Shown in pieces: positions 3,490 to 8,133 of a DNA stretch of 35,748 nt. The DNA is from Guillardia theta CCMP2712 (taxonomy: Eukaryota > Protista > Cryptophyta). A program made the position numbers and the translations under genes. Position 1 is the first letter of the stretch. Every line of letters begins with the position of its first letter. The notes below the pieces were generated by a model. That model worked only from the letters and a program-made list of their open reading frames with translations, had not been told where the DNA came from and did not search any database. The stretch lies in the NCBI RefSeq assembly GCF_000315625.1, contig NW_005434518.1:89151-124898 (forward strand). Reading direction: 5' to 3'.

Positions 3490-4122
3490 TAATTCACTCC
3501 TTCCCTCCTGCACCACCTCTGTCCTCTCTCCTCTCCCTTTCTCCTCTCTCCTCTCTTCTCTTCCTCTCTCCTTTCTCCTGTCTCCTCTGGCTGTCTCCCC
3601 TCCTTGTCTCCTCTGTCCTCTGTCCTCTGTCCTCTTTCCTCTCTTCTCTTCCTCTCTGATCTCTGATCTCTGTCCTCTCTGCTCTCTGCTCTCTGTCCTC
3701 TCTGCTCTCTGCTCTGTCCTCTGTCCTCTGTCCTCTCTCTCCTCTTCCTTTCTCCTCTCCCTTTCTCCTCTCTCCTCTCTCCTCTCTCCTCTCTTCTCTC
3801 TCCTCTCTCCTCTTCCTCGCTCCTTTCTCCTGTCTCCTCTGGCTGTCTCCCCTCCTTGCCTCCTCTGTCCTCTTTCCTTTCTGCTCTCTCTCTCTGCTCT
3901 CTGCTCTCTGTCCTCTGTCCTCTGTCCTCTCTTCTCTCTCCTCTCGGAGGAGTCCTCCTCCTTTCTCCTGTCTCCTCTGGCTGTCTCCCCTCCTTGTCTC
4001 CTCTGTCCTATGTCCTCTGTCCTCTGTCCTCTGTCCTCTCTGCTATCTGCTCTCTTCTCTTCCTCTCTGCTCTCTGCTCTCTCCTCTGTCCTATGTCCTC
4101 TCTCTCTCTCTCTCCTCCTCAC
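3490..4122. repeat. CT-rich low-complexity tract with internal duplications
   Basis: CTCTGTC/CTCTGCT units. A 38-bp unit TCCTTTCTCCTGTCTCCTCTGGCTGTCTCCCCTCCTTG recurs at 3569, 3821 and 3959. Confidence 0.85.
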
Positions 4123-4164: not shown

Positions 4165-4560
4165 AAGAAAGTATCCGGAAAAGTATCCGGAGAAGTATCC
4201 GCCAGTATCCGAGAAAACCGTTACATTGGTTCAAATGTTTCAACACAATGGCGACCATGGACCTAGGTAGGGTACTAGAAGTACCCGTGGTTTTTAAATC
4301 AAAAGTTCCTAAAAAGTACCCCCTCGTCTGAATTGGACTCCTTGGAGGGGTTAAAAAATACGTTACCATCCCCTTCGGAAAAACTCACTTTCGCTCAACG
4401 TTGAACGATTGGTCAAGACTTCTAAAAATAAACTATTGACATGTACTGAAACTTAAAAAAAGAAATCAATCACCCCACCCTCTGATATGAAATTACGTTT
4501 CATACATGAGGGGTCCTGATTTTCGTTCGTCCTATTTCAAAATTTGCCTTGTTTCCCGCC
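4165..4560. promoter_or_regulatory. Candidate bidirectional promoter island (type A) between the WWE and DnaJ genes
   Basis: AGTATCCG x4 (4170, 4182, 4194, 4204), AAGTACCC at 4279 and 4314, an AT-rich core, and divergent flanking genes. Confidence 0.4.
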
Positions 4561-4787
4561 ACCTCCTTACCCGCACTCTACTCCCTCCCTCTCCCCTCTT
4601 CCGCTCGCCCCCTCCTCCTCCTCCTTCCTATCCCTCTCCCCTGCTGCCCAATCTTCTTCTCGATACACCTCTTCATCATCAGGCATCAAGAGGCAGGAGC
4701 GCCACAGGTCCATGCGTAGAGAGCGGTTGGATTGTGTACTACTGTGCATTTGGGCGCATCGGATGTAAGTTCTAGGTGGGTGAGGCG

Positions 4788-7735
4788 ATGAAGTTGCGAG
4801 AAGAGATGAATGCGCAACGAAGACTAGTGCATCAGCTCGTCCTGGTCTTCTCTGGCGCTGTTATCTTCTTGTCTTTCTTGCCAGGAAACAGCGCTGGTGG
4901 TGTCCTGTGGGCCAGGGAAGCTGCAGGGACCAGACCGGATCTCCGCACGCTTCCTCTTCATGACGCCAAGTGTGTGGCTGCAGCATTTCGTCTCCGAGGA
5001 GGCGCTCCCAAGAAGAAGCCAAAGGCAGCGGCTGCAAAGAGTGTGAAGAAACAGGCTGCCGGTGATGCCATGGACGTGGCTGATCAAAGCATGTTGGCGA
5101 ATGATTCGAACAAGGGTGGAGGCAACCATGAGAAGCCGAGGATTGACACTTGCCCCGACACGCAGAACCTTGACAAGGATGAGACGGACTCACTCTACTC
5201 AAGCGACCTGCCGCTTCAGAACCACGATGTCGGCAAGACTGACGAGTCGTGGCTCACGCGATCGCAAGTTCCTTATGGCTTCTATAATATTCTCGGCCTG
5301 GATAGATCGGCAGGTGCTAAGGTAGCTGACAGTACTACCAATATCATGCCTTAACGCTCGATGAGCAGGAAATTCGTCAGGCTTACCGAAAGCTTGCTAT
5401 TCTTGCCCACCCCGATAGAAACCAGCACAATGTCGAAGAAGCAACTGCAAAGTTTCAAATCTTGCAAGTACTTTACACTGATGCACACGATCCTGGATAC
5501 CTGATATCTTGACAGAAAGCATACGAAGTTTTGTCAGACCCCAGCAAGAAGAGCTTGTATGATATTTCTGGTGAGACCGGAGGCTGTGCGACGTTTAAGT
5601 GTAATACAACTTGCAGGCCTTCTGGAAGAGGATACGACCGAGTTCGGCATGGGGATGGGAGACATGGCGTTCAACGATGTCGTCGAGTACTTCAGACAAC
5701 TTGAGAGGGTACTGAGATGCCCATCTGCGACCTTGCGAGCGCCGCTGAACGCGATGGGTCCAGGTTGTTTCGCAAGAGGACATAGTCTCGTTCGAGGAGG
5801 AGGTAAGTAGCTAAGACTGTTACAGTCCTACTCCCTTCATGATGCCGTCTACAGTATAGGGGCAATCCTCCGGAGAAGTCAGACTTGATTTCCTTTTACC
5901 ATCGTTTCAAGGTCATGCTGCCGGCTGTGATCGCAAGGTCGCTGAATGCTTCCCTCATACCATTCAGGGAGACTTGGCGGATGTCATTGCATACATACCA
6001 TATGCAGAGGATGATGACATGATGCGATTTCGTGCGATTCTCACTCGCGAGGTAGATCTAGACCTGTCTTGTAGACTGCACTTGTCGCAGAGTGATGCTG
6101 ATGTTCCTCCGACAGGTCCAAGAAAAGAACCTCCGTCCTTATGAAGCGTTCAACGCATGGAAGTTGGACGACCAGACCTTGAAGGTCCTCCGCTCATTTT
6201 TCTATTTGTTGTAACTGACTGACCTGCAAGAATACGCCTGAGCTGATGGTTCCCAAGAAGAGAATAACTACACAAGAAAACAACGCTAGCGTAAGTGACG
6301 TTGCTCACTACACAGCACAACTCCCTCAGTTCATGCTTCTGCAACAGTTTGAAGCACTGAGAGCAAAGATCCAAGACAACAGATCTAAGAGAGCGCAAGA
6401 CATAGTCGACAAGCTTCAAAAATATGCTCCAAATGCTGCCAAGTCACAGCCCAGCCTGGAGGCAGCTCGGGTACCCGGTCCCTCCCGTACTTGCCGGGTC
6501 TGACTTGCTGCCTCTCAGGGCTCTATAGACAACGCCATCTCCGACAGGCCGAAGCGACAGGCAGCTCTCCATCGCCCGCAGCAGGCATTGAGCTCTCCGA
6601 CTTGAGATTGACTCGTGACCCTCATACCTCCCAGCATGCTCCGGTCGTCCGAGCGGTCGCTCAGAAGTCGACGGCAAGACCTCAAAAGGCCCCCAAGCTC
6701 AAGTCTGAAGCTGCTGGCAAGCCGGCGGGGAAGAGAGGACGACCGCCGTCAACGAAACCAGCCGAGGTCGCCAATGCTGCCGCGAAGAAACCTGCCAAGA
6801 AGATTGGGGCGAAGAGCAAGACCAAGGCTGCGAGCGCCAAGAAGGACGAAGGGGTGATGAAAGGCGTTGAGAAGATCAAGAAGGCTGGAAAAGCCGGAGA
6901 AAAGGCCAAGGAGGCTCCTGCTAAGGAGAAGACATCCAAGGACAACAAGACGTCCAAGGCTTCTTCCGCCGTGAAGAAAGTTGGCACGAAGAAAACAGTC
7001 GAAGCCACTTCCAAAGCCAAGGTTGCAGGAAAGAAAGAGGCAGCAGCCAAGACAAAGAAAGCTTCCAAGGAGACTGGCAAGAAGAGCAAGACTGATGAGA
7101 ATGTGGATGTCAAGCCAGAAAAGAAGAAACAGGGAAGGCCCCCCAAGGCAGGAGCCAAGACCAGCGCCAAGGCGACCAACAAGTCGCAGCCCAAGGAGAA
7201 GAAAGCTGCTGCTGCTGTTGCTGCTCCTTCAGGCCAGGCGGCCAAGCAGAACCCGCCAGCCAGGAAAGCAGCGAGCGCAGCCGCGGGGAAGAAGTCTGAG
7301 ATGTGAGCTCGTGCCTTGCCGGGGACGTTTGACGTCACCTCACGCCTGGTGCTCCTGCAGCGTTACAGCTGGTTCAGCCGCCATGAGGGCCAAGGTGGAC
7401 AAGGACAGGGTGGTGGCGAAGGCGGCAAGGTCTGAGCATGCGCGACTTGCAAGGCTGGTCTCTGACATGCGACCCAGCGCTGCTAGGAGGCAGCTGGGCA
7501 AGAAGGTGATCCCTGTGGGGGGCTCGGCCAAGATCAGCGGAGGTCTGACTTGCCTCGTCCCTCTCCCGCATCGTCCAGTGACTGAGATGCAGTGAAGAAG
7601 CACTCCCGCAACCCTCTCAAGAAGAAGCTTGTCAAGAGGGTGAAGAACTTCCCTGTGCCCTCCCAGCCGACGGTCAGTGACTTTTGCCAGGCTGCCCAAG
7701 GCCGCCGGGCCCCTGGAGCGAAGCCCTCGGCCTGA
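4788..7735 (+). CDS. DNAJC9-like J-domain protein with N-terminal signal/transit-like leader and Lys/Ala-rich histone H1-like C-terminal tail
   Basis: The spliced J-domain reads FYNILGLDRSAGAK|EIRQAYRKLAILAHPDRNQHNVEEATAKFQILQ|KAYEVLSDPSKKSLYD (HPD intact). It continues into a DNAJC9-type segment VVSQEDIVSFEEE|YRGNPPEKSDLISFYHRFK|GDLADVIAYIPY. It can be spliced in frame into the K/A-rich exon (~6635-7302) with KRGRPP and KQGRPPK, then small basic exons to TGA 7733-7735. Confidence 0.8.
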
Positions 7736-8025
7736 TCTGGTCGAGCTGAATGCTCGTGGGCAGAGCTTGAGACGCTGATGTCTCTTGCACCCACAGTCAA
7801 GACTGTTTGTTTCAATATTTCTATGAGAAGGATATTAAGATGGTAATCATGAAGAATGTAACATGACATGCGTGCACTTGTGCTTGTAGCAATCCTTGTC
7901 TTCGTCGAACACACTGCGATGTTGTCGCGATTGAGCTGCTGCTGCCAGGCCAACGGCCTCGTGGATGGTGTTAGCCGTAGTTCGAACACCTTGAGCAGCC
8001 CGCAAATCCAGCGGGAAAGCGAACC

Positions 8026-8133
8026 GAGAACGATACCCAGGTTGTAGATGTAGAGCACGATACCCAGGTTGTAGATGTAGAGAATGATTCTCAGGTTGTA
8101 GATGTAGAGAACGATTCTCAGGTTGTAGATGCA
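8026..8133. repeat. 27-bp minisatellite x4
   Basis: GAG(A/C)A(C/T)GAT(AC/TC)(C/T)CAGGTTGTAGATG(T/C)A at 8026, 8053, 8080 and 8107. Confidence 0.9.

Follow-up and report, generated by a model that had tools for sequence, protein, structure and literature searches.

Does a single gene in this stretch of the Guillardia theta CCMP2712 genome (contig NW_005434518.1, positions 89,151 to 124,898; the whole 35,748-nucleotide stretch is called the window here, and all positions are counted from its first letter) join a histone co-chaperone of the DNAJC9 type to a long lysine- and alanine-rich (K/A-rich) tail, and to which compartment of this cryptophyte would the product go? Part of the locus (5270-7735) had been read from the letters alone as a DNAJC9-like J protein that can be joined in frame to an H1-like, AT-hook-bearing tail, perhaps serving nucleomorph chromatin. 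We found that the J domain, the DNAJC9-type middle and the K/A-rich tail are the product of one expressed nuclear gene. The protein runs, in order, from a signal-peptide-like leader and a transit-peptide-like stretch through a J domain with its HPD motif and a DNAJC9-type helical region to the K/A-rich tail. A DNAJC9 that carries a putative periplastid-type leader in front and a long AT-hook tail behind is a new form of a known family, conserved in Guillardia and Hanusia.

One spliced transcript spans the locus

RNA-like contigs from three studies revealed one spliced transcript of 16 exons and 15 introns that covers 4593-7866 on the plus strand. Four runs were placed on 4500-8000, and the splice joints were read from the contigs of three of them (X1, X2 and X5): 15/15 joints were found in each of the X1 and X2 contigs and the first 13 of 15 in X5, the last two being missing because the X5 contig stops earlier. 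Contig depth was even across the joints in all three. The joined exons form a single open frame of 723 codons, from the ATG at 4788 to the stop at 7733-7735, and an in-frame stop (4773-4775) precedes this ATG. Thus, given the shared joints and the single 723-codon frame, the fusion of J domain, DNAJC9-type middle and tail that the sequence-only reading had proposed is real.

The coordinates of that reading proved exact for the beginning of the J domain (~5274), for the two hook motifs (KRGRPP, 6731-6748; KQGRPPK, 7127-7147) and for the stop (7733-7735). It had offered two ways of splicing into the tail across 6470-6635, namely a GT intron at 6478-6518, or a GT intron together with a GC-AG intron ending at 6634. 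The latter is what the contigs contain (GT-AG, 6471-6518, plus GC-AG, 6585-6634), while the former is ruled out by contig joints that place the donor at 6471. New relative to that reading are the start at 4788 with a leader region of 162 residues, the 16-exon structure and the intron at 7640-7690, which yields a shorter C-terminus than it had assumed.

Sampled words of 4700-7900 were present at a share of ~0.4-0.6 in nine RNA-like runs versus 0.7-0.97 in DNA-like runs, the lower share being as expected from exon-only contigs. The few raw stranded X18 reads in the gene body had their first mate on the minus strand, fitting plus-strand RNA. Two contigs hold ~195 nucleotides of 5' untranslated region (UTR) and the entire leader, and one further contig begins at 4800, downstream of the first ATG. 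Fourteen of the introns are GT-AG and one is GC-AG (6585-6634, after placing a 3-base ambiguity). The transcript features are:

4593-4787, plus strand: 5' UTR (contig starts at 4593 and 4596)
4788-7735, plus strand: coding sequence, 723 codons
5322-5368, 5468-5515, 5571-5616, 5709-5763, 5803-5854, plus strand: introns 1-5 (contig joints)
5912-5967, 6052-6115, 6185-6230, 6291-6347, 6471-6518, plus strand: introns 6-10 (contig joints)
6585-6634, 7303-7360, 7430-7477, 7543-7592, 7640-7690, plus strand: introns 11-15 (contig joints)
7736-7866, plus strand: 3' UTR up to the contig ends (7858 and 7866)

The GC-AG intron is 50 nucleotides long and was spliced in all three transcript sets. The 5' UTR contains an upstream open reading frame of 18 codons (4712-4768), ending 20 nucleotides ahead of the main ATG.

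J domain and DNAJC9-type middle

Family and homology searches were made exon by exon, while the joined 723-residue model was used for translation, composition and shuffling. Exon 2 matched the J-domain family PF00226 at profile positions 16-47 (E 3.3e-9; 37.1 bits, cut-off 27.8), and exon 3 matched it at positions 48-63 (E 0.001), abutting the exon 2 match; the HPD motif is present and reads AHPDRN. Behind the J domain, exon 6 matched HTH_DNAJC9 (PF23302) at profile positions 1-19 (12.5 bits, E 0.18) and exon 7 at positions 20-45 (16.4 bits, E 0.01). The border between these exons coincides with profile position 19/20, the two matches abut and are collinear, and PF23302 was the sole family listed for exon 6 and for exon 7. 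From the definition of the E-value, the expectation that exon 6 would match the family of exon 7, one among 24,736 families, by chance may be put at roughly 0.18/24,736.

Exon 10 encodes a helix equivalent to alphaB of the DNAJC9 histone-binding domain (HBD), with the pattern F-x7-Q-x2-R-x6-IV-x2-L-x2-Y. Human DNAJC9 alphaB contacts H3-H4 through L216, I220, Q224, R227, F234, L235, M238 and Y242 (PMC8221569). When the motif was compared with the published residue numbers, all four binding-dead "4A" positions turned out to be kept or conservatively replaced in exon 10. The abutting, collinear, exon-wise Pfam matches and the alphaB contact pattern bear out the J domain and DNAJC9-type middle recognised by the sequence-only reading, and the protein very probably belongs to the DNAJC9 family (PTHR44144).

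Several observations count against this assignment: i) the exon 6 and exon 7 matches lie individually under the 27-bit PF23302 cut-off, which their simple bit sum of 28.9 exceeds; ii) exon 8 gave no PF23302 match in the Pfam scan; iii) the alphaB spacing of exon 10 has one residue fewer before the Tyr than the human helix; iv) the alphaA acidic patch is poorly kept. A sequence search of the PDB with exons 7 and 10 gave no match at E up to 10, and exon 10, modelled in complex with host H3 (57-136) and H4 (20-103), scored 0.30 (mark 0.34), a value that is neutral on binding. From the J domain to alphaB the stretch is presumably collinear with the human DNAJC9 sequence, which we take as a lead and not as a result. 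The features of this part are:

5274-5570, plus strand: J domain with HPD (PF00226; end of exon 1, exon 2 at 5369-5467, exon 3 at 5516-5570)
5617-5708, 5764-5802, 5855-5911, 5968-6051, 6116-6184, 6231-6290, plus strand: exons 4-9, DNAJC9-type helical middle (PF23302, joints)
6348-6470, plus strand: exon 10, helix equivalent to alphaB of the DNAJC9 HBD

The protein is thus comparable with human DNAJC9 and fission-yeast Djc9 (PTHR44144; PF00226 + PF23302) in its N-terminal J domain with HPD, in the helical region matching HTH_DNAJC9 behind it and in a last helix with the alphaB H3-H4 contact pattern, and its expected role would be to bring Hsp70 to H3-H4. Here a 162-residue N-terminal extension with signal- and transit-peptide-like parts precedes the J domain. 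Furthermore, it is far larger (723 versus ~260-290 residues), has a long K/A-rich tail with two GRP cores where they have a short basic end, keeps the alphaA acidic patch weakly and has the alphaB Tyr off by one residue.

A putative periplastid-type leader

The region ahead of the J domain comprises 162 residues, from 4788. Residues 1-37 consist of a basic n-region, a hydrophobic core of 15-19 residues and a P/G/N/S/A c-region ending in AG or GG; with the -3/-1 rule applied by eye, cleavage is predicted after SAG or AGG, which puts G or V at +1 (S in Hanusia). RLRGG, the end of the transit-peptide-like stretch, is followed by APKKKPKAAAAKSVKK and then by a variable acidic region. The features of the leader region are:

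4788-4898, plus strand: signal-peptide-like N-terminus, residues 1-37 (hydropathy peak 2.2; core conserved in Hanusia)
4899-5003, plus strand: transit-peptide-like stretch by composition, residues 38-72 (net positive, A/R/L/T-rich, ending RLRGG)
5004-5057, plus strand: basic patch resembling a nuclear localisation signal (NLS), APKKKPKAAAAKSVKKQA
5163-5216, plus strand: acidic motif between leader and J domain, conserved in Hanusia, LDKDETDSLYSSDLP

Periplastid proteins of cryptophytes and diatoms are marked by a signal peptide plus a transit-like stretch whose +1 residue is neither aromatic nor Leu (PMC3101018, PMC5443833). One protein with a leader of this sort is the nucleomorph H2A of Guillardia, the product of a nuclear gene, for which a nucleomorph location was demonstrated (PMC5443833). 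By hydropathy and composition the leader here is of this signal-peptide plus transit-like kind, and it is conserved in a second genus, in support of the leader that the sequence-only reading had invoked. It seems slightly more probable than not from these features that the protein is targeted to the periplastid compartment or the nucleomorph. Like nucleomorph H2A, it would be a chromatin protein encoded by a host-nuclear gene and carrying a bipartite leader whose +1 residue, predicted by eye in the present case, is not aromatic; H2A was localised by immunofluorescence, whereas the protein here is known from its sequence and would be a co-chaperone, not a histone.

The LRGG at the end of the leader resembles the C-terminus of ubiquitin and adjoins the NLS-like patch (4989-5036).

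Conservation in Hanusia phi

When exon 12 was searched against 1.84 billion representatives, it had one match only, P0001 (Hanusia phi, EP00960_P048040, "...AAC.5", 273 residues, 55% identity). Its first 21 residues correspond to the end of exon 10, residues 25-36 to exon 11 and the remainder to exon 12; the RPKRQA of the exon 11 linker is kept, and GKRGRPP and GRPPK are invariant against the 55% overall identity. A word search with exon 1 led to P0002 (Hanusia phi, EP00960_P048038, "...AAC.3", 236 residues), which covers the leader and the first part of the J domain. Identity to Hanusia was uneven along this region: 54% for the signal peptide (with 10/10 in the core LVFSGAVIFL and an invariant LPGN.AG), 23% for the transit-like part (LRGG excepted), 88% for LRGG-PKKKPKAAAA and 83% for the LDKDETDSLYSSDLP stretch, of which a 15-residue core is invariant.

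The Hanusia record is largely unspliced, because P0002 crosses introns 1 and 2 and P0001 stops in a read-through intron 12. At the level of such a record, the two sequences show one Hanusia locus with the same order of leader, J domain, alphaB helix, linker and hook-bearing tail; the same gene architecture is thus present in a related genus. At the site of the Guillardia GC-AG intron the Hanusia open reading frame has 18 in-frame residues, the first six codons resembling those of the intron; the 18 residues would be coding sequence or else come from a retained intron that happens to be open.

The K/A-rich tail and its GRP cores

The tail (residues 441-723, 283 residues) contains 25% K, 22% A, 8% S, 8% G and 7% P, with 7% D+E and a net charge of +63 (+0.22 per residue), and is probably disordered. 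It holds two AT-hook-type GRP cores, in the contexts GKRGRPPSTK and KKKQGRPPK. Both had been picked out by the sequence-only reading, both are invariant in Hanusia, and at least two such cores occurred in 0.2% of shuffles of the tail (p = 0.002). By definition an AT-hook spans 10-15 residues and centres on a GRP core, with K/R and in many cases P as its flanks (PMC11354804). The features of the tail are:

6519-6584, plus strand: exon 11, 22-residue linker between the GT-AG (6471-6518) and GC-AG (6585-6634) introns (joints in three runs)
6635-7302, plus strand: exon 12, main K/A-rich basic tail (by composition; no Pfam family)
6731-6748, plus strand: core of AT-hook 1, KRGRPP (canonical RGRP; GKRGRPP invariant in Hanusia)
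7127-7147, plus strand: AT-hook-like motif 2, KQGRPPK (GRP core after KKK; GRPPK invariant in Hanusia)
7361-7429, 7478-7542, 7593-7639, 7691-7735, plus strand: exons 13-16, basic C-terminal end (joints, translation)

Two kinds of DNA-binding protein were considered as models for this tail. As in HMGA and other AT-hook proteins (PMC11354804), GRP cores with K/R and P flanks lie in a disordered basic context and the first core is RGRP; unlike them, the tail has only two cores, ~130 residues apart and the second without the first Arg, has no acidic C-terminal tail and is fused to a chaperone module. With linker histone H1 it shares a K/A-rich basic composition resembling the H1 C-terminal domain. 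H1 tails, on the other hand, have more K and fewer acidic residues. Exons 11-14 matched no Pfam family at E up to 10 and hence hold no H15 (PF00538) winged-helix domain, exons 15-16 being below the length needed for the scan; a composition scan of the tail gave no S/TPXK-type site; exon 12 had no H1 relatives among the 1.84 billion representatives searched; and an ESM Atlas look-alike search with the tail gave no usable match. The H1 likeness is one of composition only: of the "H1-like" tail of the sequence-only reading, the K/A-rich composition stands, the H15 globular domain and the S/TPXK sites are missing, and the label of a linker-histone hybrid has no backing beyond composition. An HMGA-like basic anchor fits the tail better than a true linker histone does, and the tail may bind AT-rich DNA.

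Searches for further copies and relatives

The 87.1-Mb assembly (669 contigs) of this intron-rich nuclear genome was searched for a second, leaderless DNAJC9-like gene, as the first reading had envisaged. Genome protein searches with exons 4, 7, 10 and 12, which were exon-wise and of low sensitivity, returned self matches only and thus no such gene, and exon 12 is single-copy in the genome. PF23302, run against the whole genome, had no match, this locus included; a scan that is blind to its own locus says nothing on a second copy. Word searches with P0001 and with the J region of P0002 each matched the query itself only, and the alignments A1 and A2 had no match in two metagenome scans.

A proposed role in the nucleomorph, and its rivals

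We propose an imported, H3-H4-binding co-chaperone of the DNAJC9 type whose hook-bearing tail would anchor it on AT-rich nucleomorph DNA, a reading on which our confidence is evenly poised. The leader would direct co-translational entry into the endoplasmic reticulum (ER), and the protein would then pass over the periplastid membrane into the periplastidal compartment, since no aromatic residue is predicted at +1; import into the nucleomorph would then rest with the basic tail and with the PKKKPK patch, which is conserved. There the middle domain would hold H3-H4 dimers, like human DNAJC9 and fission-yeast Djc9, and the J domain would recruit the compartment's Hsp70, which we take to be encoded by the nucleomorph, for folding or release of H3-H4. 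The hook-bearing tail would keep the co-chaperone on nucleomorph DNA, for histone supply or rescue at chromatin.

The setting for such a role is known in part. The G+C content of the nucleomorph is 26.4% (PMC3514955); a linker histone is missing from nucleomorph genomes, whose chromatin factors are few and in cryptophytes include H2B, H3, H4, ASF1 and Hira (PMC4822330); and an Hsp70 of the periplastidal compartment has been cited (PMC3101018). Moreover, fission-yeast Djc9 competes with Asf1 for H3-H4 (PMC11775587), so an imported DNAJC9 could modulate ASF1-dependent histone supply in the nucleomorph. The diatom proteins sDTC and sDPC (PMC3101018) are likewise J-domain co-chaperones that are encoded in the nucleus, bear a leader of the periplastid type and presumably work with a periplastid Hsp70; they carry TPR or PDI modules for folding or transport, whereas the protein here carries a histone-binding-type module and a DNA-binding-type tail. 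A literature search gave no paper naming both DNAJC9 and the nucleomorph.

Among chromatin proteins of Guillardia, import has so far been demonstrated for H2A alone (PMC5443833). If the host encodes a DNAJC9 that has both a leader and a tail of the DNA-binding type, this would provide a concrete second handle on host-run nucleomorph chromatin and, if the proposal is true, a natural case of a histone co-chaperone tethered to DNA. That the tail doubles as a linker histone or HMGA protein on the nucleomorph chromosomes (26% G+C), and that the protein is thus their missing chromatin organiser, we regard as quite improbable; if so, the host nucleus would directly control both the packaging and the histone supply of the enslaved nucleus.

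Some of the evidence pulls away from the proposal. Hydropathy and inspection by eye were the basis for placing the signal peptide and its cleavage site, and a Trp lies 3-4 residues, and a Leu within 2-4 residues, past the predicted Guillardia cleavage site. The largely unspliced Hanusia record shows gene architecture, not mature mRNA. If the gene is the only copy, as the outcome of the searches would allow, the host nucleus may also need the protein, for instance via internal Met 95 or Met 102. In the tail, the Pfam AT-hook model matched neither the exons nor 24-residue windows around each core, and the second GRP core lacks the first Arg.

Four other explanations were weighed, two of which concern the destination of the protein. 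It could be the host's own, perhaps only, DNAJC9, acting in the host nucleus through a start at Met 95/102 or dual targeting, with the tail serving nuclear import or retention; it would then be merely a lineage-specific long DNAJC9. The absence of any other DNAJC9-like locus from the exon-wise searches agrees with this, as do the contig that begins at 4800, past the first ATG, and the high divergence reported for the N- and C-terminal regions of DNAJC9 orthologues (PMC11775587). However, the signal-peptide core and c-region are kept across two genera far better than their flanks, two contigs hold the full leader behind ~195 nucleotides of 5' UTR, the paralogue search with the Pfam model missed even this locus, and DNAJC9 is dispensable in some eukaryotes (PMC11775587); we therefore consider a host-nuclear protein unlikely. 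Much less likely still is a J protein of the ER lumen or secretory route, or of the plastid stroma, where the basic tail would sit on plastid nucleoids. The N-terminus leads to the ER in any case, cleavage one residue later would give a +1 Leu, which is of the plastid type by the diatom rule (PMC3101018), and the Trp stands close behind the predicted site; but the C-terminus (GAKPSA) has no ER retention signal, neither place offers a substrate for an H3-H4-binding module, and the Hanusia leader has Ser, with no aromatic residue or Leu near the site.

The targeting and the DNAJC9 role could also be right and the tail a generic basic one (for import, nucleolar-type retention, RNA binding or histone mimicry) with no AT preference or architectural role. 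Beyond the unmatched Pfam model and the missing RGR arginine of the second core, this is favoured by the fast evolution of the tail (55% identity between sister genera), by its lack of relatives past Hanusia among the 1.84 billion representatives (exon 12) and by the fact that a GRP core can bind RNA when basic patches lie at a distance from it, the extended AT-hook being the example (PMC11354804). Yet the two GRP cores and the residues next to them have stayed identical amid a drifting tail, composition makes a pair of cores improbable (p = 0.002) and the first is the canonical K-R-G-R-P-P, which leaves a generic tail doubtful in our view. Finally, the whole fusion might be an artefact in which adjacent J-protein and K-rich genes were merged by read-through or contig chimerism: the GC-AG intron at the junction is unusual, and contigs spanning two genes are not in themselves proof of one transcript. 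This we find barely credible, as the joints are identical in contigs of three studies with even depth, the frame stays open through every joint over 723 residues, and a single Hanusia open reading frame spans the alphaB helix, linker and tail. We thus retain the reading of an imported, DNA-anchored DNAJC9-type co-chaperone at the strength given above.

Neighbouring and minor features

Elsewhere in the genome, locus L011 (G000:C114:161008-161388) contains a full-length H3-type histone fold (PF00125, E 2e-42) inside an open frame of 945 residues, and is possibly an H3 fusion or a long read-through frame. Around the gene itself, raw stranded X18 reads at 7542-7892 had the opposite orientation to the gene-body reads, which suggests a convergent neighbour whose transcript extends across the 3' UTR and into the last exons. 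Unrelated CCT-repeat contigs matched 4611 and 7228 as loose ends. A 600-bp CT-rich microsatellite lies upstream of the gene (3516-4120), and a 27-bp tandem repeat (3.9 copies, 92% matching) lies just downstream of it at 8026-8131.

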